A stretch of DNA of 64,000 bases from Marsupella aquatica (lineage: Eukaryota; Plantae; Marchantiophyta), in contig OZ316897.1 in the NCBI GenBank assembly GCA_973895155.1, forward strand, positions 1,080,515 to 1,144,514, written 5' to 3'. The notes beneath the pieces are model-generated. The model saw only the letters and a list, made by a program, of their open reading frames with translations. It ran no database searches and had not been told where the DNA came from. The position numbers and the translations under genes were made by a program. Below, one piece after another: positions 1 through 32,028 of the stretch (within the stretch, counting starts at the first letter, position 1; the number at the start of each line of letters is the position of its first letter).

Positions 1-1228
1 GTCCACTCTCTCCTTCAGTCCTTCGCATTCGCCTTCGCTTTGCTCTGAAGGAGGCGAAAAGCGTTTCGATGTCTATCTAGTTTGGTTACCCTAATGATCG
101 AGGGACGGGGGACAATTAACCTTTCTAACAGTAAAACAAATATGAATTCATGGGGAGCAAGGAGAGATAGTGGCACGGGTTTTTTCATTTGGAATGATTC
201 GGGTGTACTCTTGCCTTGATCAAAAAAATAAAGAATAAAGTGAAGAACTTAGTATAAATTCTTCATGTCTTAGTAATGGCTATGAAGAAAAATAAATTGC
301 AAGGGTTTGAACCAATTTGAAAACATTCAAGATTGGGGACGTACAACATTATGTGTGAGGTAAAGTAACCAAGATGAGTATCCCCACTAAGAAACTCTGA
401 TCACATTAGGGAGTAAGGGCCCCAAAGACAACCTTGCAGATGCTCACACGCATGGGGGTTTGCGTCTCACATGTGCCAAGCATAGGTCCACTGCTAAAAT
501 TAATCAAATGTGGGTTCCTGGCTAAAATTAGTGGAGCATGTATCAAATGCTAAAATTAGTTGAGAGTTGGCCCAATGCTCAAATTTGAATTTCTAAGCTT
601 GCATGCTCAAATGTATGGGGTTTATACTTAAAAAACAATTTTTAACTAGAGAGTTTTGATCTTATGAGTTCTAGTTTAGTTTAGAATGACAATTGAACTC
701 ACTCTCTAGTTCAAATCTCAGGTGAGCTTTAAAGTTTGTATGGAGATCACATCCAAGCTTATGATAATATTCTTGGATTGAAAAGTTTTTGGCAAAACTT
801 GATAAACAAGGGTGTTCTTTCCTTTCGTGGGAATTTTTGCCCAAATTCACTTTTGCTGTCAGTCTTTGGTCTGATTGGCTAGTGTCCTACCAAGTCTGAG
901 GCCTACTAGCAGAATGTGATGGATCTCCTTCAAGCTAATTAAGTAGATCTTATGGTCAGAAACAAATATGGAGAATTGAACTTGGAAAAAATGGTAATTT
1001 GGGTTTCACAACTTTCCAACGGCACTGTAGAAGCAAGCATATATTGGCTTGTGTCAAGGAGGAGACCCTAGAAATCTACCCAAATATACTACCTTTTAAG
1101 CTATACCTTTTAAGCTATATTTAAAATGGGTGGAACCAAGAAGGGAGATCGTGGTACCGTATTTGATGAGGAGTAGTAGCTTTTTGATACTGAAGAAGCG
1201 TAGATGGAGAACAATGTAAAATAGTCAG

Positions 1229-1554
1229 AAAAAACAGGGAAGAAAAGGGCCCTTTGCAATTAAGCAGGCTACGCACTTCTATAGTGTGCACTTAAAGAAG
1301 GGTGTAGGAAGTCTGCCCGTCCAAAACCAATGCCTGTCAAAAAGAACGCGAGGCAAAATCGCACAACAAAAGACAAGAAATTGTAAAATAGTCACGAAAC
1401 AAACAGGGGAAGAAAGGGGCGCTTTGCAATTAGCCAGGCTTCGCACTTCTATCATGTGCTCTGAAAGAGGGGCGAGTGTAGGATGTCTGCCACTCCAAAA
1501 CCAATGCACGAAAAAGAGAGCGCGAGGCAAAATCGCAAAAGGAAAGACAAGAAA
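1229..1554. repeat. Diverged tandem duplication, two ~160-170 bp units
   Basis: The block AAACAGGG(G)AAGAAA..CTTTGCAATTA..CAGGCT.CGCACTTCTAT...CCAAAACCAATGC...CGCGAGGCAAAATCGCA...AAAGACAAGAAA occurs at ~1231-1380 and again at ~1401-1554. Confidence 0.85.
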
Positions 1555-1913
1555 GTGAAGAAGAAGGAAGGAAGGAAGGAAGGAATGAAGGAAGAGCGAT
1601 CGCCACAGAATGATGAGGCCCACTGTAGACATAGAATACCTCGACTGTAGAGGGAGCGAGCTGCTGCTGCTGTAACGTAGTGATGTAGTGGAGCAATGGA
1701 GAATACCCTGTTCGCCATTCCACGACGGTGCCGCGCTCGTGGATTGCGGCTCTGCTTTCTTTGATTCTCATCATTCTGCGGATTGGCGGCGCTGCGGAAA
1801 TCGGAGCAGAAAGTAGGCAGCCCTGCCCAGCCCATTCAGCAGTGGAATGGGCGGATTAAACGGACGCTGTGTGCAGTTGAGATTCACATTTCATTGTATG
1901 TTTTGCGCTTCCT

Positions 1914-1949
1914 CGAGGAGAGGAGAGGAGAGGAGAGGAGAGGAGAGGA
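1914..1949. repeat. (GAGGA)n microsatellite
   Basis: gaggagaggagaggagaggagaggagaggagagg is visible directly. Confidence 0.9.
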
Positions 1950-2095
1950 TGATTATGCTTGAAGGAAAGAATGTGGAGGGAAGGACCTCGGATAGGGCAA
2001 TAATGATGAGCATGACGAGAATTTTTTGAAGGTTTTGAAGGCGGGTAGGAGGAGAAACCGGGAGGGAGGGTCCACCCGCGGGTGGATGGGGCAAG

Positions 2096-2317
2096 GTGGC
2101 GACCGTGAGGGAAGCAGTGGTGGTGTGCTCCAACGTTGACGCAGGAGTCACGCTATGGGATGCTTCCTCCAGAGCGCTTCTGTCCCACCTTCGATCTTGT
2201 GCGGCGCCTCGCAATGCGCTCTGTCCCGTTGGCCCTCATTACCTTGCAGCTTCCCAGTCTCTCAGGTCCTCCTCTTCCTCATCCGGCAGTGCAATTTTGT
2301 TCTGGGCGTGGCATAAG
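2096..2317 (+). pseudogene. RID3: Orphan first exon of a RID3/WDR18/IPI3-like WD40 gene
   Basis: VREAVVVCSNVDAGVTLWD...LRSCAAPRNALCPVGPHYLAASQ...GSAILFWAWHK matches the plant RID3 N-terminus (IASSSIDEGIGSWD..CASP.HGL..VG..FLASSQ...GSIFYWSW.K). It ends at the donor AAG|GT (2317/2318). There is no ATG (GTG instead) and I found no further RID3 exons. Confidence 0.75.
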
Positions 2318-3277
2318 GTGTGTAAGGATTCAATCCTTTTCTGGACAATGAATCCATCCTCCTCCTTTCCCTGTCTTTTTTTCGAAGCAAAATGGTATCA
2401 GCACATACTGGCCTTTGCGAGTTGGTGAATGATCGCATCTGGTGCGCTGACATGAATTCTTATATTGATTCTTTTGTTTCTCCTTCGCTCGACTTAGCAA
2501 GTGTTGCTTCCTTTGCTGCGTTCACGGAATATGAGTGATACTGGTACGATCCTAATTCAAACTGACCGTTATTCCCCGAATAAAATGTCCGTCATAATCT
2601 TACAATTCACTCACAGTATCGCAGCATTTTTTATTTTCCTTGCTTGAGAGTAAGGATCAGAGCAAGCTACTTCTCTCCTCTTTTTGTAGTCTTCGAATGC
2701 CACTGTACGGATTAGACTTCCCAAGAGGAAGCGAGTCCATGGAATATGTCATGGAGGGACTTGAATCAATGTGGCTCTTTTCTAGAACTTGAAATACGTC
2801 ACACTTTTGCTGGTGGTCGGGCGTCGATTTTGCCTTCCGCAGACCTCCACACACAGACCTTTCCTACCTACTTGCTGCTTTCCATTCATTCGGGTACTTT
2901 TGCCAGTTTCTGTTGTTCACAGTGGAATCTCTACATTTGTGTAGAAGCGATTACAAGTTGATTTTACACTCGTTTGTAGGTTCCTGATGAGATTTTTGGC
3001 TTGTATTATCTAATATTCTGAAGTGAATGAGAATACACCCGCTGAGGTGAGATCACATTGCAACGGCTTCAAGAACGGCTCTCTGTCCCCTTGGATGGGA
3101 CTCGTCCTGACCATTAGGCAAGCATCACCCAATTGGTCATATAGTTAAATTCTGCAAACATATACTCCCAAATTTTTATAAGCTCCCACTGCATCGTCGC
3201 AGATCGATTTACGTGCCTGTTGGCCCTTTATCTTTTGACGATTTCTTTGGATTTACATTGTGTTATTTGTAATGCAG

Positions 3278-3393
3278 GAAGCCTTGAAAGCCCTTTGGCG
3301 AGCCGCCTTTAGAAATTGTGAGCTTCCTGGCCTTGTCTGTGAGGAATGGAAAGAGATGGGCTGGCAAGGAGTTGATCCCTCAACAGATTTCCG
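3278..3393 (+). pseudogene. Orphan internal exon of an ELMO-domain (ELMOD) gene
   Basis: TGCAG|EALKALWRAAFRNCELPGLVCEEWKEMGWQGVDPSTDFR|GT. WKEMGWQG.DPSTDFR is the ELMO/CED-12 domain hallmark. The neighbouring ELMOD exons are absent. Confidence 0.85.
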
Positions 3394-3766
3394 GTCTGTA
3401 CTCCCAGTTCCTCTTTCCTGACCTTTATTGATTCGAGGAATAGACAGGCGATCTATCGGTTCTCTAATCATCTTTATTAGTTGAAAGATATACCAGCTGC
3501 AATAAGGAAAATTGTAGGGGTCCGTCGTTTGTGGATGGATATAGTAAAAGGCTGTGAATGGGTCAGAGAAAGCCTACGCTTAGCCTTGACCTTTGGATCA
3601 GTTTACGAGTCTATTCTGTAGGATTTAAGTGCATTTAATTGCACCTGGCCTGCTTGTGCAGTTAAAATGAGCAGCTTGTCATTAGCTGAGATTCTTCAAA
3701 GTGGATCAAGTCCTGAATTCGATTAAGGAAATCTAATACAACTGGACTTCATCTTTTGATCTCCAG

Positions 3767-4630
3767 AAACAGAATATAGAACACTCCATTTACAACTTGA
3801 TGATGGTATTGAAGACCTGGACTCGCTGGTTTTCAGTAACCAGATCACTTTTCAGCCGAGGTTTAAGTTCTTCTTAGTTTTATTTCTTTGAAGGCAATGG
3901 TCAACGTTGCATTTTCATCCAGTGCAACAATTCCCTGTTCAATATTTTAGACAGAACAGACGCAGATTTGTTTGTCATACACTTACTGACGATATTGAGA
4001 CCCTAACGTTATACAGAGCAATTGTAACAATTCTTGTGTGCCATCTAAACAGCAAAGTCCAGATCAAGTATTGATCCCCGAAGCTTGCCCCATCAAATTT
4101 GTGAATTTACAGTATCAACATATCAAGGAACTAATTGAACATTTCAATTGAGAAACGTGGAAGCTTAGGAAAGACTTATCCCAGATGAAGTTCCTGCAAC
4201 CTCTGTGGTTGATATTAACAATAACAAATAGATCGCGGTCGATCGTAAATTGGGAAAATGGTTTGAGCAATTTAGGCAAGTTGTTGACTTGCTCTGCAGA
4301 AATACGAGGAAACAATAATGGTGAACTCGATGATGGTCCGAGATGTTATTAGAGCTCAGTGATTCCTACATTCGAAGTTTATTAGAGCTCAGTGATTCTT
4401 ACATTCGAAGTGCTCGGAGTCAAAGTCGGTCGCCAAGTCTGTCCTCCAGGATTAAAGTTTGTACATCTCTTCTTGCGCGGTTGAATAAGGAGCTGTCACA
4501 TCCAGATAGTTTTCGTATCGATAATTTTGTTCTTGGGCTTAACTGGGAACTGCATCTCCAGGATATTTCAAGCAACAGATCGATTCGTGATGCACTTTCA
4601 TATGAAGAGAATTTCTTTTGCAGTCAACCT
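3767..4630 (+). pseudogene. Orphan exon-like segments of unidentified host gene(s) at 3767-3860 and 4300-4630
   Basis: AG/GT-bounded segments read TEYRTLHLQLDDGIEDLDSLVFSNQITFQPR and ...SPSLSSRIKVCTSLLARLNKELSHPDSFRIDNFVLGLNWELHLQD...FFCSQP|gtaagt. A 33-bp tandem duplication at 4346-4411 gives LLELSDSYIRS twice. Confidence 0.5.
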
Positions 4631-6184
4631 GTAAGTACTGCTTGAATTTTATTCATGAAATCTATTTGTGTAATTTAAGCAGTTGTCACTGCAGGCACGT
4701 CCTTTGTACTTCATAATCATAAATTTTGTTGATCTTGGATCTAGTAGCTCCTTGCAATTCTTCATAATCTCATCTTTGCGACTTCTCTGTCCTCTCTTTG
4801 ACGCTGAGGCAAAGGATCATCCGAGTCCAGCAAATGGGTCTGCGCCTGGAGCAAAAGTACCCCCCAGAGAGCCTATGGATACCGAAACTGCTTCCCAGGA
4901 GACCGAGACAATGCAGACGAAATGAACATTTACTGAGTTAAGGAGATAGGAATATTATGGAACTTTTATCGATGCCAAGTTGTAGACCGGGGAATTCAAG
5001 ATTTGATTTTGGGCATCTCTTTGATGGGGACACAAATCTACCCTTGGTAGCAACTTGCGTTTCTTGTTATTACTCATCAGATTGAACATTCTTCCCCTCC
5101 TTTCTAGTAATTCTAAAGGGGAAGGGGTAACGTGCATCAACATACTCTTTTACTAGTGTGACTGGTGTAACTATCTGTTCACGTGTTTAGTAGTAGGACT
5201 ACAATTATCTGGGAGCTGCACATGCGACAGCGGTATTCATGGTTGTCTTAAAGACGCGTTAACTATCTCATTCTGCTCTATGAGGGGCTCTTGATAACTT
5301 ATCCAGTTAGACCCCAGCAGATGCACGAGTACCACAGGGATGAGATGACACATTTGTAGGTAGTAGAAGCACACCAAGAATAAGTGTCTAATCGGAGTTC
5401 GATTCTGATTAGTATCCACTTGCCTCTTGAGTTCCAATCTATGGTATCTGCTCCCCATAGGGTGGCTTGACTGTGTTGGGTGTTAATATTCATACAAGTA
5501 AGTGCCGGATGTTCTTTCTGGTCTTTTCTTTCGGTCTCATACGCTTGACTTTTCAGATTTAGGATTACCTCTACTTCAAGTGAGGAAGAGGCCTGGCAGC
5601 TAGCCTGTCACAAGCTTGGAGACTGATGACTCATTAGCGTTTGAGGACTCCTCTTTTCACTCAATTGTGGACTGCTTGTGTCAATTGTTCTCTCTACTGA
5701 TTGCGTGAAGCATAGTTTAGAGCCCTAAATTTGGCTCAGTCTATCAATGCCAGCTTGTGGAGAGGTTTTGCCTTGGCAAAATCTATGGTTGCATTAGTTG
5801 TCTTTGGTATGCTGTACCTTAGCGGAGAAGTGTAGTCCTCGGGGGGGACGCAGTTTAGGTGAGAAGATGTGATGTCGTTTTGTTGTTGTCTGACGGTGGT
5901 AATGAATGGCACTGTAGGCACACAGATTATTGATGGGGCGCAACACAGCCTGAGACACAACGATGTGGATTTCATCAAGCTTCAAAGGCTTCTATATTGA
6001 GCTGTATGGATGGCTTGAAGACTTGCCTTTGATCTACTACCGGTAATCTTGAACTACCGGTCATCAATGTCGTTTGCGAGTCCAGAATATGTGTGTAATC
6101 AATCGTAGATTCCTGGACCTTACTACCGCAGCCACTCAGTCTAAAGTAGGTAAATCTCAATGCTGCCAAACTTGAGTCCTAAAA

Positions 6185-9100
6185 ATGACATACGACTGTG
6201 ACATCTGTGGCTGCAAAGGATTTAAAACCAATGGTGGGCTCGCTTCTCACAAGAGTACCAATAGATCATGCAAATTAGCATTAGCCCAGAAGGAGGTTGA
6301 GCCATTTCCCCCATTCTATGTTGGGGAATCTTCTTCTCCACTAGAAGTGCAACAAACTGCTGACGAATTGATCCACATGATTGATGATCCTCAAGATCAT
6401 CCATCCACAGCTAACATTGAGGAAATATTATGTACTCCTGTAAGCAATTTCTGTAGAGCCAGTGATCCAAAGGACAGGTTTGATTCAACATTTCACCTAG
6501 TGGCCTTTTTAAGGCAATGTAGAAATACTCTAGGGATGTCTATCAAGGACACCAGAAGGTTTTTGGGTATGCTTTTTCACCCAAATTTTAATAGAGAAGA
6601 TGTTTCTGTGAAAAATGTAAGTGACCTTCTCGCATATGAAGAAAAGATGGCAAGTGATCATGGTATTGAATGGAAGCAAGCGGTGGTTAGAGAGAAAGAC
6701 CAGCATGTGCACGAGTTGGTGCTGCATTTTCAAGATCCAGTGAAAGTGTTGTCTACTTTGTTTTCAAATTCCAACAACAAGAAAGACTTCAAACTGCTTC
6801 CCGCTGAAGCTGAGGCAACAGACCACTACAGTACTCCGGAAACAGGGCACTGGTGGAGACAGATGCATGTAAGGAAACATACTGTACTTATCTATTCAAT
6901 TGAGCTTTTCTTTTTGTTCCTGGATGAGGTTGGACACTTAGTTTGTTGGTGTTTGCTGCAGACTCTCGTACAACAGAGGTGTCCAGGTGGAGTCATTGCC
7001 GCAATCATCTTGTATTCAGATCAAACTTCCCTGTCTAATAACCAGAGAGTCTCTGGATATCCATTGATGATGTCCTTAGCCAACATTGAATGTGCTGGAC
7101 GGCGGGAGGAGCTTGGCCATGCCTTGTTAGCCATTTTTCCCACTTATGGACCATGTGATCAGGAATTGTTGAACTCTAGAAATCCAACTAGGCTCAAGTG
7201 CTCACTTTTGCACAAGTGTTTGAGCATCTTGTTGGCACCACTCAAGGCATTGAGTTTTACGTAAGTCATTATTTCTTTAACCTAATTTCTCTGTTATTTC
7301 CTATAACCCAAATTACTATCTATGTGGTTGCTGATATATTTTTTAGATCCATTTTATATTACATTTGTGCCAAGACATTGATTGTTCATTGGCATGTGAT
7401 GCGACAGGGGCTTGCCGTTGGAGGATCCATTAGGTTCACAGAAATGGGTATTCCCACTCCTATATGGCTACATCGGTGACCATCCAGAGAGCTGCAAAGT
7501 AACGTGCACTTTTGACTCCAATAGATGCAGTTTTCCATGTAGCACATGCCACTGTCCTCGAGGTCAATTGAGCACAGTTACAGCAAGGCTTGAATATCGA
7601 ACTCAAGAAAACATGAGTGCTCTATATGAGGAGATGAATGAAGTATCAGGAACTGTGGCTGTGATGGATGAATTGTCCAGGAGTAACTCTGTCCATCCCA
7701 TTCAGGTACAAAGTTTATGATATCTGAATTTGCATCATCACTAGTTCTATTTTGCAAATTTATCATTTATTCTTTTGAATTATCAAAGTGAACGTAAATA
7801 CTTATGCAAGTGTGTCTGTGTGTGTTGGCAGTGTGCACTTTGGGGTTTCCTTGGTGGGGATACGATTCTAGGAAACCCGTATAGATGTGTGCATCCTGAC
7901 AAGATGCACCAATTTGATTTAGGTTTGTTTAAAACCCTAATTGGGATCTTGAAAGTCATGGCAGTTGAAGTGCCGGCTGTCACATTCAAACGAAAAGCAT
8001 TACAGGTATTGGACCGGAGGTTGGCTTGGGTGTTAGAGCATCACCGGTATCCAGAGTTCAGACTTCCCTCGTGCAAGGGAAGGACTGGATATTTTACTTC
8101 TAACGCCACTTTCCAGGCATTTGAACATAGGTGTGTGTTTCAGGTTCTAATTCCAGTGATGCTTGGAGTTTACCCGACCCCTGTGTTGCAAGTTGTGATC
8201 TCTATGTGGGATTGGTATACTTTGGCTTTCCGGAAAGCTGTGCACACTGAGGAGACTCTGGCAAAAATGGATCGGCTGATGGTAGTGTAAGTACTTCTTG
8301 CTTTTTACTGGATAGTTCATTCTATTATTGCTCACTGATTATATTAGGCTGCCAAGTTGTTATGAATAAGACAGAATTATTAATAATTTGCACATGATGT
8401 TGTGCAGGATGGTGAGAAAGTTGATAGTGGTGTTAGGAAAGTATCAAAAATCAGAATTTGATACTGTAAAGGTCCACGCAATGGCTCACCTCTCTGATTC
8501 TATTCGGCGGTCAGGGATTCCAGTGGAGTATTCGACTAATCTGTATGAACATTTGCACATTTTGTTGATGAAAGTGCCATATAGAGCCAGCAACAAAAAG
8601 GAATTCGCCAAGCAAATGACTAACCACCACCGAAGGCTACTAGCTCTTAGCCGAAAAAATGCTACCTCCATTTCAGAGGTTGATAAGGCAGATGATCGAT
8701 TCACTGCGTTAGACAAGGTAAGGTGCTTAGGCGGTGAATTATCCATTGAAAATATAATTGGTTTGATATCTGTAATGCAATGCATTCTATTCGTCGACTT
8801 ATAACTGATGTAATGTGAATGGCAGGCTGTGGCAACAGGGTCTAATGTTCTCATGGGCACAAGCCTACGTTTCCATATGGACTGGTTGCAGAGGGAGATA
8901 ACTGATATCCCTCTTAGCGGTAAAGAGGTCTTGACTACACAACCAGAGATATCGTTGCATTTGAAGACATCTTTGCAAGGTTATTGTGTCGTTAATGATT
9001 TGCAGACCATTGAGGTGAGCAACTTGTGACTTGTAAGTAGTTGTGAATAAGGTTTAAGAACTTGCTTAGCTGCATGGTCATCTTTACTAGACACCTCCAT

Positions 9101-9609
9101 ATCTGATGAGGGTTTCAATTGATTGCATCAGACTCTCGGAGTAAAGACAGGGGTGGCCATTGCAGCAGGAGTGGGTGATAGATTTGCGGATTGGCCCATG
9201 ACAGGCAGGGCCACCCCGAGTTTTCATGGTGCCCCTTACTTCAGGTGATGTTGCCATACAGATGGAGAAAGTTGGGGATGAGCCCTTGACATGGTATGCC
9301 CAACTACGACTCCTGTTCACTTGTCCAGTGACCACTAGCAGTGGAGATAAAGCCACCCGGGACATGGCTTTAGTGAGGTGGTATAATAGTCAAACAAGAC
9401 CAGAGAGGACTACTGGGTGCTTGATCCTAAAGCTAGTGGTGGATAGGACTGAGATAGGAGGCCACTCAGGGACCTCTAGCAGGAGGAGACTAGCAGCATA
9501 TGATGTGGTAGAAGTAGCCAACATTCTAAGTGTAGTTCATCTTGTGCCTCATTATGGAGTGGATGAGCACGAGGCAGGAGAATTCCTCTTGAATAGGTTT
9601 AAGTTCTGA
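6185..9609 (+). CDS. Plavaka-family transposase (C2H2 Zn finger + DDE core + C-terminal domain), 7 exons, one frameshift
   Basis: Exons 6185-6868, 6962-7260, 7408-7705, 7832-8286, 8408-8717, 8826-9014 and 9132-9609, joined by GT-AG introns. Motifs: CDICGCKGF....LASH; ILYSDQTSLS...YPLMMSLANI; LLHKCLSILLAPL; FPLLYGYIGDHPE..C..CSTCHC; PDKMHQFDLG; KVHAMAHL.DSIRRSG...YST..YEHLH...K.PYRASN; WYAQLRLLF. An extra G at 9244-9245 breaks RATPSFHGAPYF/SDVAI. Confidence 0.85.
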
Positions 9610-9838
9610 AGCAATTGATGAGCAAGATAAAGTTGGAATAAAATTGTCTACAAACTTTGAAGCCATTAAAAATATGTCATTGTAAGTATGTCTCAAATTT
9701 GAATTGTTTAGTTTTATCTCGAGAGTATCTAAGTCTTTCAAGTTTACAACAACTAAATCCCTCAAAACATCTCAGCCAAGAGTGTTGAGGCACGTCCTAG
9801 ATCTATTTCAATCAATACCACTTTCCAAGGATGTGGCT

Positions 9839-10110
9839 GTACCTAGCAACCTATCATCCACTAACCGACAATGAAACCTTGAAATTTTACTAATGAAGTA
9901 CCTAGCAACCTATTATCCATTTACCAACAATGAAACCTTGAAATTTCACTAATAAAGTACCTAGCAACCTATCATCCACTAACCAACAATGAAACCTTGA
10001 AATTTCACTGATGAAAAGATGACCTTTAAACAATGCATTTGCAATGATTCAACCTAATTTCACTGATGAAAAGATGACCTTTAAACAATGCATTTGCAAT
10101 GATTCAACCT
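9839..10110. repeat. Tandem arrays: three ~59 bp units followed by two ~53 bp units
   Basis: GTACCTAGCAACCTAT.ATCCA.T.ACC.ACAATGAAACCTTGAAATTT.ACT x3; AATTTCACTGATGAAAAGATGACCTTTAAACAATGCATTTGCAATGATTCAACCT x2. Confidence 0.9.
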
Positions 10111-10740
10111 TGGAAAGAGTGGACCATTCCACACTAAATACTGTATCAGTATATAAACATTGTGTCACATATGAGAGGGTAATATGCAATCAAAACACAA
10201 TGAAAAGTTAAAAAGACAACAACAAATATACAAGTCTAACCCCAACAACTAAACCTCAATTAATCAACAGCGCAACCATGAAGTGTCATCAATGAATCTA
10301 TATTATTCAAACAATGCATCCATGGATATGTTATAATGAAAATGGAATTGTTCAATACTGAAATGTTCATAATGTATCAATGTGAAAACATTGCACAACA
10401 TATCTAAGGGTAATATGCAATGAATAGACAATGAAAAACTGAGGGAATTCATTGAATATGTGATACTGAAAAATTACTAAATCATTGTCCATATTTTCAG
10501 CAATGCTTCTATAATGTTTTTCATCGTCTAAACTGCAATTAGTAAACCATCAATGTTTCAACACGCATACAACACTAATACAAGTCATCACAATTTTAGA
10601 CCAATCAACGTCAGTCCATTCAACAATGAACCAATGATGAAACAGACAGTGCAGAAAACAATGATGTTTAAACATTGCAATGAAATCATCATGACACACT
10701 GTTGAAAGGGATGGATCCTAAATTCCTGATGTAAACCCTA

Positions 10741-10975
10741 AACAATACCCAGGGATCCCACAAGGACCACACCAGGAAGGTTGGACTAAGACCACAAGCC
10801 AGGGTAAGGAGAACCAAGTACTCCCATCAGGACAACCCACCCACACACACACAAGGGGGGACAATACCCAGGGATCCCACAAAGACCATACCAGGAAGGT
10901 TGGACTAAAACCACAAGCCAGGGGCAAGGAGAACCCAGTACTCCCATCAGTACACCCCACCCACACATACCCTCC
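10741..10975. repeat. Tandem duplication of a ~120 bp unit
   Basis: ACAATACCCAGGGATCCCACAA.GACCA.ACCAGGAAGGTTGGACTAA.ACCACAAGCCAGGG...GTACTCCCATCAG at 10742 and 10861. Confidence 0.9.
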
Positions 10976-12639
10976 ACACCTTGTTTGTGGAGTGTGTATT
11001 GACCTTGGGACCTATAGGTTCTAGGCTAATCCCCTAGCCAGCAACCCTAAGCCACTTGCTTTTTCCCCAACCGAGAGCACTGGCTTGCTTATGTCATTAA
11101 TACTTCCCAGTTCTATGCCTTATACCAAGTCAAAGTTCTGGTCCCCTAATCAAAATGTTTGAAAAGATACTTTAATGAGTCATACTCATATAACACCTTT
11201 TCCTTCTATAATTGTTCCCATCATACTGATCTAACACCTTTCCTTTTGTAATTGTCCACGTTTTTGGGTTTCAAAAAGCCATTGCAATCCTTACTTAGCT
11301 TAAATGATGGTCCGCCCAAAATATATATCGTGATCAGCATGATTGTCTTGGGCCCACTTCTTGACATCAACTGTCTACTGTAATATGTAATGCCAAAAAT
11401 TTCATTTTCTGGGCTTACAAATTTGGAAATGGAGAGAACAAACCTAGGCCGTCAGATGTTTCCAAAGATTTTTATGGACTCTTGGATCCATTGACCAAGA
11501 GTGTCCAAAGATATACTTTTCATAATAGAATACATAGTATAAGTGATGACTCTTATGTTCCATCGTGTATTTTTTACAAGTAGCAAAGTACGCAAGTTGG
11601 GAGGAGAATCTTTTGGGGCATGAGAAACTTTGAAGTGTATGAGGATTTAAAGGGAGGAAAACTTATGGGTTAATTGGGCCTGGGAAGGAAGGGAATGAAG
11701 AAATGGGACAAAGGGAGAGGAAGAAAATTAAAATGGTTCCCTCCCAATAGTATTGTGCAACCACACCTTGACCCCACAACCCGAGGGGCCATGCCTCTGG
11801 CACTCCCTCTCACACTCCCACCCTCCCATGTCCTCGCCCTCCCAGCAACATCTTTTTCCAAGATAAAGTATAAATGCCAAAGTGAAGGCCAACTGTTTTG
11901 TCTTTACATTTTTTTATTCTTTTTAACTGTTTTACCTTTTGTGAAAACAGTACCAATTTACTTTTTTCCATCTAAACTTCTATTTCTTTTTAAAGAAGGC
12001 TTTTTTTATGAAGGCCTATGAGATCAAACTCAGAACATTTTTTTCTTCACAAGACCCGAAAGTGTATCCACCTCAATTTGACGATAAGGCTTCTCTTCAC
12101 ATTGATTGCTACATTGACATATCCTTTGGAGAGTCGCAGATTCCACAACGCACCATCGGTCAAGCACTGAGAGTTCCCCGGGGAAAAGATCGAGGAAAAA
12201 ACTTTTGGAGATGTAATTCGTTCATTAACGAGGAGAGGATATAAGCGTGTTAATTCCATCTTCACTTGAACTTGAAACAAGAGTCAAGTGCTCAAATCTT
12301 CACACACAATAATCATCGATCGATTCATTGGGTTTGAGTCAAGTGCTCAAATCTTCACACACAATAATATGATCAACAATCGATTCATTGGGTATGAATC
12401 TAGGAATCATCGGTCGATCCAAAACTACTGTACTAGCCTGCGTTCCGCGGTACTGTGTAGCGCCAATGATTTCATCTACACTCTCAAGTACTAATACATT
12501 CGTCCGAGAACCTCGCCAAACTTTCGTGGCAATCTTCGGGGCTGGACCCATGTACGAAGGTGTGCTATATATGTGCAACGAGACAGTACATTCTCGGACG
12601 AATGTATTAGCAAGTTTCTATATCTCTTTGGTTTGTTAA

Positions 12640-15600
12640 TTTGTCCCTAATTTTGTTCGTTTGTGTCCACTTCTCAACGGTCGATCTTTTGGCTTTTGAA
12701 CCAATATATCCCTTGTATCATGGTGAGTCACTTGATTGTTTGAACCACGTTACAGACTGGTCATCTGCTTCCAAAATTAAAGGTGCTGGTTCTGCTATAA
12801 ATGTTACTCAATTTGAAAGGCTTTCGTGCCTTCACAAAAGAAAGGGTGCTCCTTACCCCGTCTCCTTTCTTCCGGGTGGCACGGACCTGTCCACCAGATC
12901 TTTGGTACCTTGAGGCTTGGTAGAGTCTTCTTCTGGTGTAATTTACCTTTTCGAATGAGCTAGGTACGTAGCCGCCAGAACTCGCGCTATGAGTACAATC
13001 CGGCTCGATCTCTGACTTGAGAGAGTTTCAAACTTCGATCATGATATACATGTGGCTGACGTAGTAGGCTGCCACCGTAGTATCCCTTACATTGCATTGG
13101 AATGAAAGCGCATAATTTGAGACTAAAGTTTTCTATATCCCTTGGGTAGCATCCTTTCCTACCTACGTTCTGCACCCTATCATCAGCAAAGTTGTTGAAT
13201 TGTTTTGGATTTTAAATCAAAGATATGGGTAAAGGTCTGGTCCCTGTGAATGCACACTGAGGTCACACACAACAGGAACGAATGGGCAACCTTAGCTAGG
13301 TCAACACAATAATGCACAACGACACAATCATGCATACATTCCGTGTCCGTATCTCATGGACTCTTTCAGAATTGCACGTTTCCTCCGCAGACGTTGTAAC
13401 AAGTTGGATAAATACCAATCAAAACTTTGAGAGCTTTTTATTCTGTGTCATGAAATTATAACCTAGGTTGTCAACTACAAGATCGTCTCACAACTGGGAA
13501 ACACTAACGATATCGTAGAGGACTGATTAGTTGACCAGTGCCTATTAGTTTAGGGATCAGGATCCAAGATCAGGATGTGAACATGAATGTAGAGCTCGAT
13601 CACTCGTATTTTCACTTGTTCATGAAAAATCAACTATACTGCAAAATTCTCAATAGTGTCTTGAGTAGAGAGAAAGGAAATGTACCTTGGTCGGAGGAAG
13701 TAGTGGTACTCAGGATGTACAGTACTATAGAAATCCTAACTGTAATGTTCCCAATCGGACTCTCGACCCTCAACTTTGGATATGAGATTTTGCATTAGAG
13801 TCATAGTCAAACTTGATTGCTGATTGAACACTTTAAGGGCCATAGTAGCCACTACAGAACTGCAATGACTGTATGAGTACGTTGCATTGAATGGATGGAG
13901 GCGGGGATGGAGGAAAATTTAGATTGGCTCTGACTAATATCGAGAAAGATCTGCAGTCATATGAAGCACGTTTGCCAGTATTTTCAATGATTAAATGCAG
14001 AGCACAAGCTGGATAATCAAACGTGAGCACGTTGTATTCAAAGCTTCAAGTCACTTAGCAATTCGCTCGTGATATTGTTTGATTTGTGGGATCTCCAAAG
14101 TCTTGCCAAATATATTTACTCTGTATTATATTCGCACTTGGATATATGATCACCATTACTTTCGTAATTTGCTAACTTTTGATCGTCAGCGATGGTTGAG
14201 AAAAACAATGGATACATGCACATCGTGGCAACGAGAGCTCCCCAGTCATGCACTCGCAATCCTGTTCTCTGGTTCTTTCGTACGGGAAGGGATGGTAGCT
14301 GTGCACAGCTGACTGAAATCAATCATTTTTAATCAGAATCTTACCAGTCTAAACCCCCAGCCCAATTTTGAACAGCCCCTTCGAGAGAATTGAGGAGCTG
14401 GTGATCTTGTTGCAATAAGCAAACTTACTGGAGTCTTAAGTTACTTATCTCTACAGACGGATGCCTTTCCAGACTTTCGTATTACGATCGCTACTGTAGT
14501 TCCACTCACGTTTAAAATGCATCCTGACAGGGCCCGCTGGACGATAAACGGAGCTATTTGGAGGTACCCTCAACCATGTCCACGAACGCATGAAGTTTCA
14601 ATGAGGCCGCCACTACGTACGTAATAGCTGGAGCTCGATCATCACATTTGGGAAGCTGAAGCCTTTCTTGATTTGGCCAAAAGAAGGGATTCATATTGAC
14701 ACTGCCAGTGGCTGGAATAATGCAAATTAATCCAATTTGAAGACAGTTTCGAGGTTCGTAGTATCAATTTCAAAGGTCTGAAAACCCTGTTGTTGATCCT
14801 GGCTGAGATTTAGACCACATCAGGGACGAAGGAACCCGTACCTCCGCAGTCCCCGGACCGCAGATTTTGTATTGTTGAAGAGATTTTGCTACGACAAATT
14901 CTTGCAATATATGAAGCATCCTATGTTGAACTTCATTATTCATCACGGTAATTTATCAATATTGTTTTGCCCGGTCCCTTTCTATCGCAGGAAATGAATT
15001 GGGAAGTGATCCCAAGATTCGTTTGCATGGCTTCCCCTTCGAAAATGAACGGATAGTACCCAGACATTATGTGAACCGTGGTGAATAGTTTCCATTTTCA
15101 GCAGAAAGCAAGCGAGAAAGCAAGCTAGGAAATTAGCGTCAATCCAATGTCACTTCAAACTAGGCTGGTCAGCAAACACAAGGGAAACTCTAGGGAACAA
15201 TCACAAAATGACAAGTTAAAGATAACGAAGTTCTCCGCAGCTGTAGTGGTTCACAAATTATAGATAAGGAAGTTCTCCGCAGCTGCAGTGGTTCACTAGC
15301 CCCGGTAGGAGATCTCAACAGTCATGTTACGAGCCCGCCTTTCCCAGCGATGAGCGCTGGCATCGAGCGATACAATTGATTTATGAATTACGCCAACCAA
15401 CAGCTCTACACATACAAAGTGAGAACGAACGAAGGCATGAATTTGAAGTACGTACAAGGGAACCATGGGCTCGTTCAAGGCACCTGTGTTCAATGAACAG
15501 TATCTGCGCAACACAGAATTTGGCCCGAAATTTGGGCACAACACAGAATGAAGGTAAGACTTTCTGGAGGCTAAGTGGAAACTTGATTTTCTCTTCTCGT

Positions 15601-16170
15601 TTGCATTCCCAGAATCAACTGCCCAACTGATTTCTTGACTGGGATTGTAGCAGAAACCTTAATTCCCAACGCTACAGAAATAATCACTTCATTCCAAAGA
15701 CAGGATGTTGGGAACTAATCAGAGATGGCACCACTATTCTCCACCACTTCCCCTTCATTCGGTCTTCAGTGTATCCGTTGGGACTTGGTCTCCTCGTTTT
15801 TCTTGGTGACCTTCGTTCCCTTCGGTCATTTGGCAGTGGTATACGTAGTACTCCAAGGAGCGATATGGCTTGTGAATTCTCTCTAATAAAGGGTGGATTT
15901 CGTGACAAAAAGACGGATTCACGTCAATGCCGGTGGGCGCTCACTTTCTGTGACTCCTTCAGATTCTCCCCATGTATCAGACGAACAACCCCCATGATCC
16001 GGTCCAGTGCAGTGCTTGGAGACGATTTCGTGATTCATCTTCCCTGGTCACAGCACAGGCTACGAAGGCCAGGGGGGCTGTCCGTTCAACGTATCTGGTC
16101 ACCTTGCTGGGTTACATTCATTGTACTCAGCCCTGCTAAAGGGAGACGTTGCTGTACCTGTACATGATTA
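12640..16170 (-). mobile_element. Highly decayed Ty3/gypsy LTR retrotransposon internal region
   Basis: Minus-strand remnants in gypsy order: basic gag-like tract (~15700-15900), H..DLLPG pre-RT motif (~15310), integrase WEHYS*DF resembling WEDISMDF (~13740), and LPKGYRKL* from the integrase C-terminus (~13135). Many stops and indels; no paired LTRs identified. Confidence 0.5.
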
Positions 16171-16366
16171 ATTTAAACCTCTGGTCGAGTCAAAGAGAGC
16201 CCAGTTCCACGGAACAAGAGGCCCATGAGAAGGGGCCCTCGGTTCTCCCCCTATGAGGGTAAGGAACGACTATGGGACCTCAGGCCCCAGTAGGGGGTTC
16301 CATAGCCGCTCGGGCTCCTGCTTCCTATCTCCTGCTTGCTAAAGGCCATATGATTATGTGAATCTA

Positions 16367-16618
16367 ACTAATAAAGGGCAATCAAAAGCTACTCCATGAG
16401 CCTATGTCTAGAATGGCACCGGTACATGAATCTATGTAATCAAGGGGAATCAAAAGCTACTCAGTGAGCCTAGTGTCTAAAGGAACTTTTAGACCTTGAC
16501 TCTAATTGGGTGCATAATTGAAAGTGAGGTGCAGAGCTACTCCATGAGCCTAATGTGTAGAGCAAAACTTTTAGACCTTGACTCTAACTGAGTGCATAAT
16601 TGAAAGGGAGGTGCAGAG
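16367..16618. repeat. Nested short tandem duplications
   Basis: AATCAAAAGCTACTC..TGAGCCTA occurs 2-3 times and AACTTTTAGACCTTGACTCTAA.TG.GTGCATAATTGAAAG.GAGGTGCAGAG occurs twice. Confidence 0.8.
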
Positions 16619-19044
16619 AAAAAAGATGGGGGCTAAGATGAACAAGAAATAGCATGGAATTATTATTTTTGCAAGGTTTTTTTTTTTACTTGTTTCTATG
16701 AAGGGGTCATCAGACTACAGTAGTACTCTTCTAGAATGAAGAACCATAAAAACTGTTTGAGTGACCCTCTTATGCAATTCACTCCCTAGGTTTGCTGATT
16801 TTTAGTGCTTATCCTGCGTAGTGTACTCCTTAGTTTTACTAACCTTTAGTGTGCTGAGTAGGGCTTTTGTTCCTTTACCACTGAGTGTGATTCTAGGGCT
16901 TTTTGGCTCCTCAGTCTTCTTGAGCTTTTCCAATGTTTTAGTCTTCTTGGGCTTTTCCAATGTCTTTTCTCCTCTATCGGGTGTCCTCATCTTGTCTCTC
17001 AGTCTGGGACTTTTTGTTGTTTGGCAATGTGATATTATATTCATAGTTTTTGTTGTATTTTGCAGCGACTTAGCATATCTGTGTGCGAAAACTTCTCGTC
17101 TAAAATGAAACTTATGGGGGGGTTTATTTTAAGAGTTAAAAACACACACGGACATTTTTCAGTAGGTCTTTTTCACCTCCTCTTAGAAATTATAAGTCCC
17201 GTATCAGAGTTGTCTGGATATAATTCTTTGTTGCACACAATTTTGATTAGCAACCTTTGACTAGGATCCTTTTCAGTTTAGAGTTGTATTGTTTTACTCT
17301 AACACACAGAGATCCAGGAATCACATCTACATTTAAAAAGCTTAGATGGAGATCCATCCAATTCTCGCCTGAGGAAAGTATTCATCATATAATAGTCATT
17401 CACTAACATTGATCAGATGTGAATTGATCAGATGTGAATCTTCTCCCTATTGGAGAGACCAGGTTGCCCGAATCTTCTTCCCCAGAATCCGCTGGTGAAT
17501 CTTTGTGCCATGAGGGCCATCTTCTGCCCTTTCCTCGATCCCCTCTATCCTGTCCTTTCCTCGATCCCCTCCCTCTGCCCTGCCATCGCCTTTTGCCAAT
17601 TCATCAAATTGTCATCGTCTTATATTCATCGGTCTACCCTTCATTGAACTGTAATTTAATTTCCGTCAATGTCCACTGCCTTCTGTGCTATAGATCTTAT
17701 ACTTACGCACGCATTCTTCCTTTCTCTTTCAAATTCCAACCCTGTATGCACCCGACCTTCTCCTTGCCCTCTTTAATTCCTCCTGCTAGTCCCAAACCGA
17801 ATCAGCAATGTGACAGTTCTTCTCCAGTGCTCGATCGTCAGTCCCAAACCGTTCAATTCATCAACATGACAGTTCTAAGTTTCACTGCTCATTAGTCAGC
17901 GAGCGCGTTCGTCTGGTTATGTTCGTTCGGAAGTGATCAAATGGCAATTGAAATGTGTGGCAAGTGTGTGGATCCACCGGACTTACACGAGCTCTCGACG
18001 ACTGCACTCGGCGCATAGCATCATCTATGCTTGACATCATATATGTTCCCAGCTTAGTGACAGGAGGACGAATGATTACTCGAGTTTAGTCGATCCATCG
18101 GCAGTCCCATCTGGTTAAAAACATTTGTAAGTAATCCAGCGATGCTGCAAGTCGCCTGGGTTCAGCAGCACTTGCACGGTCCTCATTCCCGAGGTTATTA
18201 GTGTGAAGCGCCACCTACCCGGCTCCATTCGAGGTATTTTTCTGGCTCAAAAGTTTTCTCTACTCGTCTTTTCTGCCCTTCCGTAGACTTGACGTAGGAA
18301 GATTTATACTTGACGCAGGAAGATCAAGTTCCGGACCGTCCAGATGGTGTAAAGTAGTCTTGTGTAAAGTAGTCTTCCTTTCCGTAGGCACTGAAACTAT
18401 GTGGGCCATACACAAAGGCGGGCGACGCGGAGGCGATGTCCTATAGGTCCCTTGGTATATTTAACGCTCGTGGCGCAGATGTAAGTGGTCAATTGATTAA
18501 AGAGTCAATTCTCCGCGGATTGACTGCCAAATTCTAGTTCTCCTTCTTGCATGGTACTACACAATTACAGGTCAATATACCGCGTATGGGGGTACGAGAG
18601 GTAGAGGAATTTTGATGAGAATCGTGTGCTAGATTTCTCAAATTGTTTAGTTGAGGTCCAGAGGAATGAAGGAATGACCACTAGGAGGAAGAGGAAGTCG
18701 GCCTCGTTTTGTAAGATTTGACTCCAGGCCAGGGCCAGGATACAAGCTATAAACACAATTTCTGTTCAAACATTAGAGACTCCTTTCTCGATCAACTACA
18801 CATTTCCCGTCCGGTGTCATCGATCTTCAGTACGTTTGAATCTTCGATGATACGGCTCGTTTCTTAATAGATTTTGGACTGCAGTCTTTTGGTGGATTTC
18901 TAGGAATTTCAGGTCTCTCGGTCGACCAAAACCGCCTTGTTTGGTTTGTGCCTCTTCTAGTCCTGCTGGCCCTTTTGGTTCTGATTGTGGACTCAATCAT
19001 ATTTTGAGTGTACTTTGTATTGCAGCCGACAGAATTGTAACACG

Positions 19045-22000
19045 ATGAAATTCTGGGAGTTTCGAGAATTCGTGAGAAAAAAAAACCACCTCATCAATTC
19101 GGTTGGTGCCTGCTAAAATTTGGTTCTGATGATGGAATTCTAAACGTTATTTTATGCCCACGCAGTCCTCACGTTCTTTAGTGTTGGTGAGCCTTCTACG
19201 GGAGAGGTGACCGATTTGTCTGGGGTTCAAGATTAATTAGGAAATTATGGAGAGACATCCCAAGAATGGCACGAGGCGAATCAACAATCCATTTCCAACA
19301 CAACCGCCGGGGTTGGAATTTGTGAGTGGGGATCTGTTGTTCAATGCCACAGAGCTAGCGAGCCAATCGTACATAGCCGGGCAAGGATTTGAGGTTCGCT
19401 GGCAGGCGGAAGACGGAGGCGGCTTGCAGATTCACCATCAGAGCGAACCAGATCGAGTTTTATGGGGAACTGTTCCTGGACGATCATTCGTTTCCGCTGC
19501 AGTAGGACGAGATTCTTTCGAAGAGAGTCGAGGCTCCTTCGCCATTCATGACCGGGTGGACATTGTCTGCAGCCACCAGAGCGTCCAACAAATCACATTG
19601 GCATGGCCCTCCGAGACCGCCGTCATGCATCCGGAAATCATGATGGGCGACCAGCCATCACATCCTCTCGTAAAATTAGGCCGAGAAGGAAAACTGGAGG
19701 CAATTAAATTCGCAGAAACTGGATCCAAATCGCAAATGGATGCAGACGGGACTCCAATTGGCAACAGAGGTCCCTCAGTTATAGTCTCAGGGTGTTTGTA
19801 CGCAGATCCCACACTAGCCAGACACAGAACGTTTCCTACCTTCTCGTCTCCCACTACATTTGGCCATACAACTCTGGCAAACGCAGATAATCGACAAGGG
19901 AGGCTGGAAACACTCGTCGGCAAGGATTCCCGATTAGCAGTAGAGGTGCCATACTGGCTCGTGTTTTACGAAGAACGTGAGGAACAGCTCGGATTCTCTG
20001 TAAGGTTGGGGCGATCGAGAACTGTTGCACTTCAAGAGCCGTCCAGAAAAACCATGTTTCAGCCCAGCACGAGAATGACAGCTACAAAAGAAGACCATTC
20101 GATCGATCGAAGACATTGGCTGTGGTCGGAGATACCGGTATCTGCATTTTCTCCTCTGCCGAAGGAAGCAGCTGGAGAGGCTACTACACCGTTCAGACGG
20201 AGGAACAATTCACTGGAAGAATTTGGAACGATTGGTGATCTCTCCGAAAAGAGTTTGACGTCAACGAGATCACCAGCTCCTCCCTTTTTTCTCTCGGGAC
20301 TGAAGTTCAACACGCTCTTCGAGTTTGTGCATCTCCTGCAAGATGTTGTCGACGAGGACCCGCATTTCCAACAACCTGCATTCAACAGGGTGCAACTGAC
20401 TTATTCCACCAGTAAAGACGAGAATTTCTTCGGCTTTGGTGAGCAGTTCTCCCATTTCAACATGAAGGGCAGGAAAGTCCCCATTTTTGTTCAGGAGCAA
20501 GGTGTTGGGAGGGGTGACCAACCTGTCACAGCGCTCGCCAACTTGGTGTCCAACAGGTATATAATTCCAACTCAAATCAAAGTATGGCATACGCCATTCG
20601 TGAGCATTTATCTCTGAACGAGAGGCAGAATAAGCTGATTTTGAATGATCATCTCACGTAGATCATAGGTCCAAGTAACATTTTCGGTTCGTCCGGCCAG
20701 AAATGTAAAGTCCGCGCCGAAATCAATGGTCCTGTTCTTGTCGGTTAAATTGAGAAGAATGAGCTCAGAAAAGTCCTGCAATATTCAATGAATGAAAATT
20801 GATCGAAGATTTGATGTTCAGTGAGCCGTGTGTGAAACCTCTCTAACTTACGGAAAGTAGCTTTAGTGGTCACTTCACGGCGTCATCATGATCGTTTCTT
20901 TGAATGATTGCAGGTCGGGAGGGGATTGGCACACTACATACGCACCTGCCCCGTACTACATGACGTCCGCTATGCGATCGCTGTACCTGGAAGGTTACGA
21001 GTTTGCCGAATTCGACTTGCGGCATAATGATGCTGTCCAATTACAGGTGAGGTGGTACAAGCTATTAACGTAACAATTCGTACAAGAAGCGATTCGTCCG
21101 ATTGTCCGAGTTGTCCGCAATATGGATTTCATATTGGGGGAGGAAGTGAAGAGACGAATGAGTACCGAAAAGCGTGGCGTCATCAATTCAGTTAGATAGT
21201 TTCGAGATTGCAAAATGTTAGTAATCGGTTGATCTGGAGTGGTGTTGGGTTGGAGTATTGGGTTCATTGGAAATTGATGGAGGGGTGGTTGATCCCATGA
21301 AGGTCCATGCGGGATCCGTGAGTGGACGAATTCTTCACGGGAGAACTCCAGCAGAGATTATCCAGCAATATACTGCAGCCACTGGTCGAATGCGTGAGCT
21401 TCCCTCATGGATGTTGAAGGGGGCTATTGTTGGAATGCAAGGAGGATTGTACAAGGTTCAAAAAGTTTGGCAACAGCTTCAAGACCTCGAAGTTCCTCTA
21501 GCTGCATTCTGGCTGCAGGTTAGCGACCCCGAGAAGCTGACTTGGAACAAATGCAAAAGGTTATATGCATGGTCTTGTGGACATGGACTGTTGCTTTACT
21601 CAATGGCCTCTCGTGCCTCATTTGCAGATCCACTGCTTTAGCTCGTTCCAGTTTTCGAGAGGCCGTATCAAATTCGTAGATTTCTGTAAAAAATGTTCAA
21701 ATACCATACGTGATTAGATTTCACGATGATACATCCATTTTTATAACTTGATCACGAGCTGAAGGTGAGTATTCTTCCTGGAAAAGGACGGTGGTTCCCT
21801 ACGCTAACTCGTAATTTCTGTATAGAAACCTTCTCAGTCCTTGAGAATTTTGGTAATGATCACAGGTGTTTTCAATTATCTTTTTTCTGAGTGCCTAACC
21901 TGTACTTGATTTCTTCGTATCCCGTGCGGACGTTGGACAGGATTGGGTTGGGCAGAGAAAGACCAGTGTTGGATGGCAATTATGGTGGAACTGGGAAGTG

Positions 22001-31193: not shown

Positions 31194-32028
31194 TTTACCG
31201 TGACGTCCAGTCCTAGCAGAGCCAAAATTGAGACCAGCGAATGCGACAGCAAGAGGTAGAGAATCTGCAATCTGTTTCACCGTGCAAAATTGTCAACATA
31301 GGGCCACTTTGGTACCGACACCTAACCTATTCTGTTCAACTTTACTATGAAACGGAAGGATGCTAGAAGTTGACGCTGAGAAATGAAAGCGAGGAGAGAT
31401 GTAGCGCTCCGTGAAACCCGGTGAGAGGAGAGACAGTGAGAGGCTCGGATGCAGGAACACTTAGTTTTTTCCAGGCTGGCGCATCACGGGTCGGTAAGGG
31501 GAAAGTAACTGGGGCCCCCGTTTTTTACGCTGCTGCGGCCGTTTGGAGTTAATTTTTCAAAACTGGATCACACTGGACCACACAATGGTTTTGTCGCGCG
31601 TTAACAGCTTGAATTAATATAACCAGTTTTTTGTCCCTTATCAACAGCTAGTCTTCGTTTTACACAGGGTAATCACGCGACACCACACACCCTGTGCCAC
31701 TCTACCGCACTCACGTCGACACTGCCCTACGCACCATCCTCCTCCATGTTTTACTAAGAAAATAACCAGAAATTTGAATTTGGTGCGTTTTTTCTTAGTC
31801 TTTCGGCGCTGCACTCCATTTGTGCAATCTATAGACTACTTGGCTCACATTGGAGGTGAGGAATGCGACCGGGCAGTTGCACTCAGTTTCGAATCTGTAG
31901 GGACTGTCTTCACTACATCTTGACTACGCTCTTCTCTGCCTGAACCGCGACGTTTTTTGATAGTACTGGTCATCTGGTGGGGTTTTTCCAAATTTGTTTC
32001 AAGGCGGCAGTCGTCACTTCGGGATAAT

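Follow-up and report, generated by a model that had tools for sequence, protein, structure and literature searches.

The segment at 2.1-4.9 kb of the analysed window (the whole 64-kb stretch of DNA) represents a non-coding patchwork, in which single exons with their intron borders were copied at the DNA level from two or more host genes unrelated to each other; a dynamin-related gene is perhaps a further source. The patchwork is followed on the same strand by a gene of a Plavaka-family transposase. The two are tentatively read here, at rather less than even probability, as one nearly autonomous Plavaka transposon, which would carry about 3 kb of transduplicated housekeeping-gene exons (RID3/WDR18, ELMOD and perhaps others) in its 5' arm.

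Gene fragments upstream of the transposase gene

The following features were annotated in this part of the window:

2081..2317, + strand, first exon of a RID3/WDR18/IPI3-type WD40 gene, present as an orphan (homology to bryophyte-like exon-1 ORFs, frame, splice motifs)
3278..3393, + strand, single internal exon from an ELMOD (ELMO-domain) gene, likewise an orphan (Pfam PF04727, AG acceptor, GT donor)
3767..3860, + strand, exon-like open frame with AG/GT borders, no homology detected (no Pfam match)
4300..4630, + strand, exon-like open frame with AG/GT borders (weak Dynamin_M match)
4809..4925, + strand, terminal-exon-like piece with an AG acceptor and a low-complexity open frame ending in TGA at 4923-4925, no homology detected
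6185..9609, + strand, Plavaka-family transposase gene with introns (Pfam PF18759, collinearity with an 840-aa relative)
9800..10700, + strand, AT-rich, motif-rich 3' flank of the transposase gene (tandem repeats, CAATGA motif)

Exon 1 of RID3, placed at 2096-2317 by the sequence-only reading, was borne out by an alignment over its full length: 74 of 74 codons align with bryophyte-like first-exon ORFs at 68-72% amino acid identity (E about 1e-29), and the homology starts at 2081. The donor GT at 2318 lies directly 3' of the exon. In the bryophyte-like RID3 contigs (L004-L011), WD40 exons come after exon 1, and the best PDB match of their next large ORF is WDR18/IPI3. These WD40 propeller exons are absent from the whole 64-kb window, where tblastn with whole RID3 loci as queries detected nothing of the rest of RID3; accordingly, the piece is not an intact RID3/WDR18/IPI3 gene.

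The single internal ELMOD exon at 3278-3393, also proposed from the sequence, is supported by its AG/GT borders and by a match to Pfam ELMO_CED12 (PF04727) with E 1.5e-10. Its reading phase at the start is 0, and 2 bases are left over at its end. The match covers profile positions 19-63 of the 176 that make up the full ELMO/CED-12 domain, so this is not an intact ELMOD gene either. No further ELMO or WD40 pieces were found by Pfam scans of all ORFs on the + and - strands of 1-6184, and the opposite strand of this region gave no domain match in the Pfam scan of its ORFs. Since the search found no other part of either gene, the RID3 and ELMOD pieces are considered orphans.

For the three remaining pieces, described earlier as exons with splice signals, the AG/GT or AG/stop borders were observed, but no homology was detected for 3767-3860 and 4809-4925, and that of 4300-4630 is weak. 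The latter contains a 33-bp tandem duplication at 4346-4411, and a weak likeness to the beginning of the dynamin central region is seen in roughly its final 25 codons, at about 4559-4633 (Dynamin_M, E 0.002); the word search, PDB and Atlas gave no support for this match.

All five pieces detected share the orientation (+) of the transposase gene, as had been noted, and precede it by 1.3-4.1 kb. Neither host gene is complete here, again in agreement with the sequence-only reading: RID3 and ELMOD are represented by one exon each and nothing more. Its description of the pieces as derived from several unrelated host genes holds for these two, while the others are without confirmed homology.

The Plavaka transposase gene and its 3' flank

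The assignment of the transposase to Plavaka was confirmed by two matches to Pfam PF18759 (E 1.9e-17 and 1.2e-8). The gene is collinear with the 840-aa Plavaka protein P0005 over residues 1-818, and the sole break seen in it is one single-base frameshift near 9243-9246; this degree of preservation suggests that the element is probably of no great age.

The 3' flank contains tandem repeats with units of 59 nt and 55 nt at 9839-10110, and the motif CAATGA occurs in it 13 times (9800-10700), which is an enrichment of about 40-fold. Candidate TGATG termini of the PlavakaB type, represented by CAATGATG ending at 10639 and 10666, are located about 1.0 kb past the stop codon.

Search for element ends and further copies

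Terminal inverted repeats (TIRs) were searched for, as were target site duplications (TSDs), by comparing 1-6185 with 9610-19000, using generic 16-mers, 12-mers with CA/TG starts and a TSD of 2-3 bp, CATCA/TGATG pairs and exact inverted words, with controls; only pairs at chance level were found. Exact inverted matches of at least 10 nt numbered 23, with about 23 expected, and the seven CATCA sites upstream show no pairing with a TGATG candidate beyond 7 nt and no TSD. A TSD of 2-3 bp alone holds too little information, and there was no TIR pair to anchor a TSD search. The pair 5014/13227 (11/12 matches, TSD GG) was rejected: its similarity ends at 12 nt, and controls give such pairs in about one of ten tries. 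As element ends, these sites would leave the fragments outside and the transposase alone inside. No cluster of the inverted counterpart of the 3'-arm motif is present anywhere in the 6.2 kb upstream in the window.

Ends enclosing the fragments alone were also sought. A distinct Helitron or MULE enclosing them between termini of its own, named in the sequence-only reading as evidence against carriage by Plavaka, was not found, which is a weak negative. No TIR pair or long TIR brackets the fragments within 1-6184. No Helitron 3' end (a GC-rich hairpin, then CTRR next to T) was detected in 4800-6300 on the + strand or in 1-2300 on the - strand by a crude scan without a family consensus, so this result is weak as well. 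Because the element ends were not found, the fragments are candidate cargo of the element.

Self-BLAST revealed no second copy of 1-12000 in the 64-kb window. Closer Plavaka copies were represented in the word search by 2 short matches from Logan, and two metagenome scans found nothing. A full HMMER search gave 162 matches, the best with 74% identity over 99 aa; the relatives in the public collections searched do not exceed 74% amino acid identity and lie on short contigs. Upstream non-coding DNA showed no conservation among the relatives compared.

Comparison with a related element

The layout in the window was compared with that of a distant relative:

GCA_965154635.1, contig CBCUJL010000004.1, 14.4 kb, element L001

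L001 is bounded by 13-bp TIRs starting with CATCATC, at 223 and 14611, in agreement with the published termini of PlavakaB, 5'-CATCA..TGATG-3' (those of PlavakaA are TGT..ACA, and the TSD is 2-3 bp) (PMC12730594). A palindromic subterminal motif lies inside both ends (9 matches, 0.4 expected). The L001 transposase, which is 37% identical to that of the window and collinear with it, stops about 1.0 kb short of the element's 3' end, and the 5' arm is 9.8 kb long. The window has the same arrangement on the 3' side: its arm to CAATGATG is of the same length, and a repeat motif fills it. Unlike the window, L001 has clear TIRs of the CATCATC type and motif clusters in both arms.

With a layout of the L001 type, the fragments in the window would be internal to the element, and the long 5' arm of this relative makes the cargo reading plausible. 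In the 5' arm of L001 itself, three unnamed gene calls are present; the Pfam scan revealed no recognisable host domain there, and no similarity to the upstream region of the window was found. Accordingly, L001 offers no precedent for fragment capture in the lineage.

Origin of the patchwork

The likeliest of the readings considered, though at somewhat less than even odds, is that the fragments lie within the Plavaka element, in a PlavakaB-like transposon's long 5' arm. The transposase gene would then be near the 3' end of the element, with the left terminus upstream of the window or degenerate, and the element would be mobile. The fragments may have entered as copies made through template switching or gap repair when the transposon was excised and repaired; this mechanism has been proposed for Pack-CACTA and Pack-MULE. 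In favour of cargo are the orphan state of two exons whose genes are unrelated and whose borders are conserved, the location of every detected piece on the transposase strand, a transposase gene broken by a single frameshift, the L001 layout with its 3' arm of matching length, a right arm with no TIR partner in the 6.2 kb upstream, the lack of separate ends bracketing the fragments in the searches made, and the extra genes known from Plavaka elements of fungi and red algae. Against it are the failure to find TIRs or a TSD, the right-arm motif with no upstream inverted cluster, unlike L001, and the single copy examined.

That the mosaic arose independently of Plavaka is a serious possibility, itself short of probable. 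The pieces would be filler DNA from double-strand-break repair, or part of another, unrecognisable transposon, and Plavaka would have landed beside or in them. This is consistent with the lack of ends enclosing both fragments and transposase and with the motif of the right arm missing upstream, although no bracketing of 1-6184 as a unit of its own, by a TIR pair, a long TIR or a Helitron-like 3' end, was found. The candidate pair 5014/13227, which would bracket the transposase only, is at chance level. A weak FANCL-like ORF at 13300-13458 (+), beyond the motif-rich arm, could indicate that stray exon-like pieces are not one-sided, but its match (19.4 bits against the Pfam cut-off of 23.8) is about what the 300 or so ORFs scanned would yield by chance.

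It is unlikely that the pieces are single exons left over by deletions from a decayed block of adjacent genes, duplicated or ancestral, that included RID3, ELMOD and others, with no transposon capture involved. The single orientation and fixed order of the pieces agree with such a block, as does the upstream region retained by the RID3 piece within the GC-richer 1500-2500. However, exactly one exon per gene, with clean splice borders, is found within 2.8 kb, and no more of RID3 occurs in 64 kb. The bryophyte-like RID3 loci fetched are compact, with exons within 3-4 kb, and have no ELMO or dynamin neighbour; adjacency of RID3 and ELMOD in the loci checked was thus ruled out.

A real expressed chimeric gene with exons from RID3, ELMOD and others is very improbable. 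The splice borders of all five pieces are plausible, and the reading frame continues from RID3 exon 1 into the ELMOD exon. However, frame inspection found no in-frame ATG before the RID3 piece and an in-frame stop upstream of it at 2036-2038; continuing in the phase of the ELMOD exon, the piece 3767-3860 reaches a stop after three codons; and the three other pieces have no homologues. With the RID3 piece lacking a start codon and the splice from ELMOD to the next piece running into a stop, the patchwork is unable to encode one protein.

Comparison with known systems and significance

In seed plants, gene-fragment capture is well known for Mutator, CACTA, hAT, PIF and Helitron elements; to our knowledge, it is undescribed for Plavaka. 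Pack-CACTA and other Pack-TYPE elements of flowering plants contain fragments of unrelated host genes, in the same orientation and bordered by introns, within DNA transposons of the CACTA-related (CMCT) clade, and their origin by copying during transposon repair has been proposed (PMC6379663, PMC8903248). By definition they are non-autonomous, with the fragments between recognisable TIRs and a flanking TSD (PMC8903248). The window shares with them co-oriented, intron-bordered fragments of unrelated host genes. It differs in the nearly intact transposase gene 1.3 kb downstream, in that TIRs and TSD were not found, in the lineage, which is Plavaka, and in the host, which is a liverwort.

Accessory genes are carried by Plavaka elements of other organisms, namely TET/JBP in fungal PlavakaB (PMC12730594) and PAG1-3 in giant Plavaka of red algae (bioRxiv 10.1101/2025.02.11.637652). 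As in these elements, a Plavaka transposase, kilobases of extra DNA alongside and a repeat-rich 3' flank are present in the window; but fungal and red-algal Plavaka carry whole conserved accessory genes, whereas the window holds single pseudo-exons of housekeeping genes, and domain scans of its extra DNA revealed no TET/JBP or PAG-like domain. Plavaka was believed absent from plants until a 2026 report of its presence in algae and moss, which infers its later loss in land plants (PMC13519894).

The cargo reading would add incrementally to the known cases of gene-fragment capture. If the fragments lie outside the element, they are ordinary pseudogene debris adjoining a transposon. If the cargo reading is true, the Plavaka lineage would have its first case of Pack-like capture of host gene fragments, from which chimeric transcripts or small RNAs directed at the parent genes could arise. 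Fragments inside the element would mean that exon shuffling by DNA transposons reaches another CACTA-related branch and plants of bryophyte grade, and would provide a concrete locus for testing cargo-derived chimeric RNAs or siRNAs.

Plavaka transposase gene

The window has a plant-like sequence. The following features, all on the + strand, are considered.
2096-2317 (+), RID3 exon 1
3278-3393 (+), internal ELMOD exon
3767-3860 (+), exon-like piece
4300-4630 (+), exon-like piece
4809-4925 (+), exon-like piece
6185-9609 (+), Plavaka transposase gene
9800-10700 (+), AT-rich 3' arm

The presence of a Plavaka transposase on the + strand, proposed earlier by the sequence-only reading, was borne out by Pfam matches to the family in two ORFs, 6185-7264 (E 1.9e-17) and 7412-7720 (E 1.2e-8), and by collinearity with P0005, an 840-aa Plavaka protein. 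According to tblastx and tblastn against relatives, a single intron-bearing gene extends from the ATG at 6185 to ~9609 and is collinear with residues 1-818 of P0005. All introns within 6185-8284 keep the frame; a one-base frameshift near 9243-9246 is the sole break detected relative to P0005 and to L001, a distant relative (GCA_965154635.1, contig CBCUJL010000004.1), and no further in-exon stop was detected.

One transposase copy was found in the 64 kb. Relatives in protein collections show at most 74% identity and lie on contigs of 1-2.6 kb, while metagenome scans for Plavaka relatives gave no matches. The nearest public relatives of both the transposase (50-74% at the amino acid level) and the RID3 exon (72%) are found in the Logan runs SRR18067302, SRR18067379, SRR18067384, SRR18067441 and SRR18067450, which form one block of sequencing runs; the project behind this block probably holds a related bryophyte. 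Elsewhere in the window, the region 31957-37984 (+) contains long ORFs of 600, 943 and 480 aa, the translations of which read like those of a non-LTR retrotransposon.

Gene fragments upstream of the transposase

The ORF spanning 2096-2317 matches five short proteins with 66-72% identity, and WD40 ORFs are located within 0.4-1 kb after the matching ORF in the contigs of these proteins. Human WDR18 was the best match (E 1.5e-15) for the 201-aa ORF of L008, a bryophyte-like contig with a RID3-type locus, and yeast IPI3 was also matched; these two proteins are the counterparts of Arabidopsis RID3. In the window, 74 of 74 codons were aligned and DNA similarity ended at the donor site, confirming RID3 exon 1 at 2096-2317. 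The gene is incomplete here, as had been suggested: tblastn with all ORFs of three RID3-type loci found nothing more of it in 64 kb. Because an in-frame stop is present upstream (2036-2038) and an ATG is absent, the piece is unable to start a protein.

The domain scan covered all stop-to-stop ORFs of at least 30 aa on both strands of 1-6184, as well as shorter ORFs near the ELMOD exon, with exons searched singly. The predicted internal ELMOD exon was recovered as ELMO_CED12 (E 1.5e-10, profile positions 19-63 of 176), with no second ELMO hit in 1-6184. The only other domain hit on either strand of this region was a weak match to Dynamin_M (E 0.002), encoded at ~4559-4633 and unsupported by word search, PDB or Atlas. 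The pieces 3767-3860 and 4809-4925 are bordered by AG/GT or AG/stop, patterns that can occur by chance, and no origin was detectable for them. A 33-bp unit within the piece 4300-4630 is tandemly duplicated (4346-4411, 97% identical), adding 11 in-frame codons. Accordingly, the proposed derivation from several unrelated host genes is confirmed for two, RID3 and ELMOD; beyond the weak dynamin lead, no parent was found for the other pieces.

The junction of RID3 exon 1 with the ELMOD exon is in frame; the ELMOD exon ends with two spare bases, and the following piece, read in that phase, has a stop after three codons. The pieces fail as one reading frame, and the mosaic 2096-4925 is therefore a patchwork of pseudo-exons rather than a gene.

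Right arm and element ends

The transposase gene is followed by ~1.0 kb of AT-rich, tandemly repeated DNA containing 13 copies of CAATGA (roughly 40-fold enriched) and CAATGATG, ending at 10639 and 10666; it is a credible right arm of the Plavaka element. The region is flanked by two short tandem arrays, one at 1215-1554 (174 bp x 2) ahead of the RID3 piece, the other at 10742-10970 (~120 bp x 2) just beyond the AT-rich arm; they are mutually unlike in either orientation. An isolated ORF at 13300-13458 (+), 2.6 kb past the motif-rich 3' arm, weakly matches FANCL UBC-like domain 1 (E 0.0011; 19.4 bits, below the cut-off of 23.8; profile positions 43-83 of 89); no further FANCL domain was found in 13000-19240, and the ORF may be another stray exon or a chance match.

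No left terminus was found in the window upstream of the transposase. Seven CATCA sites lie upstream; their matches to right-hand TGATG sites extend no further than 7 nt, and none is accompanied by a target-site duplication (TSD). The inverse of the right-arm motif forms no cluster anywhere in 1-6185. Exact inverted words of at least 10 nt numbered 23 against ~23 expected, and generic searches for terminal inverted repeats (TIRs), run with controls, remained at chance level. The best-looking TIR pair, 5014/13227 (11/12 match, TSD GG), would leave the fragments outside; it was rejected, as similarity stops at 12 nt and controls equal such pairs about 1 time in 10.

The layout of such an element outside fungi is seen in L001 (37% identity), which has enough flanking DNA. 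A 14.4-kb Plavaka-like element occupies L001:223-14611, with a 13-bp TIR at 223 and 14611 that starts with CATCATC, the type of start published for PlavakaB termini (PMC12730594); the flanking 2-3 bases give no clean TSD. The palindromic subterminal motif TTCCAGCACTGGAA (9 matches vs 0.4 expected) is clustered inside both ends, at 793-1021 and 13933-14120. The transposase gene lies at the 3' side and ends ~1.0 kb short of the 3' end, similar to the distance between the transposase gene and the candidate right end in the window. The 9.8-kb 5' arm upstream of the transposase contains three unnamed gene calls; it gave no Pfam hit and shows no similarity to the window. We found no precedent in this lineage for fragment capture.

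Origin of the mosaic

The leading, if tentative, interpretation is that the fragments are cargo of the Plavaka element, which needs element ends enclosing both the fragments and the transposase. The left terminus may lie upstream of the window, with the fragments internal; the element may also be 5'-truncated or have very short TIRs, and the fragments could then lie inside or outside it. Nearly as likely is a separate entity, independent of the Plavaka element, although neither a TIR pair or long TIR nor a Helitron-like hairpin-CTRR end brackets the fragments alone, these being weak negatives with no family consensus. Decayed neighbouring genes and a chimeric gene jointly take the remaining, smaller share of likelihood; remnants of neighbouring genes are not favoured, since RID3 is compact in the bryophyte-like loci compared, with no ELMO or dynamin neighbour.

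Comparison with Pack-TYPE elements

A mosaic of intron-bordered gene pieces that share one orientation is the hallmark of a Pack-TYPE element; by definition, such elements are non-autonomous, bounded by TIRs and flanked by a TSD (PMC8903248, PMC6379663). The locus contains host-gene fragments, but a transposase gene is also present, inverted pairs in the window are at chance level, and no CATCA/TGATG pair bears a TSD; the locus is therefore not classed as Pack-TYPE, although it may work like such an element. Plavaka elements with whole accessory genes are described from fungi and red algae (PMC12730594; bioRxiv 10.1101/2025.02.11.637652), and Plavaka elements are recorded in algae and moss (PMC13519894); no literature report of host-exon capture by Plavaka was found. 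At this locus, scans of both flanks of the transposase gene brought up no TET-like domain. If the fragments are indeed Plavaka cargo, the locus would take a well-known phenomenon to a further transposon lineage and plant group, which would be an incremental advance.
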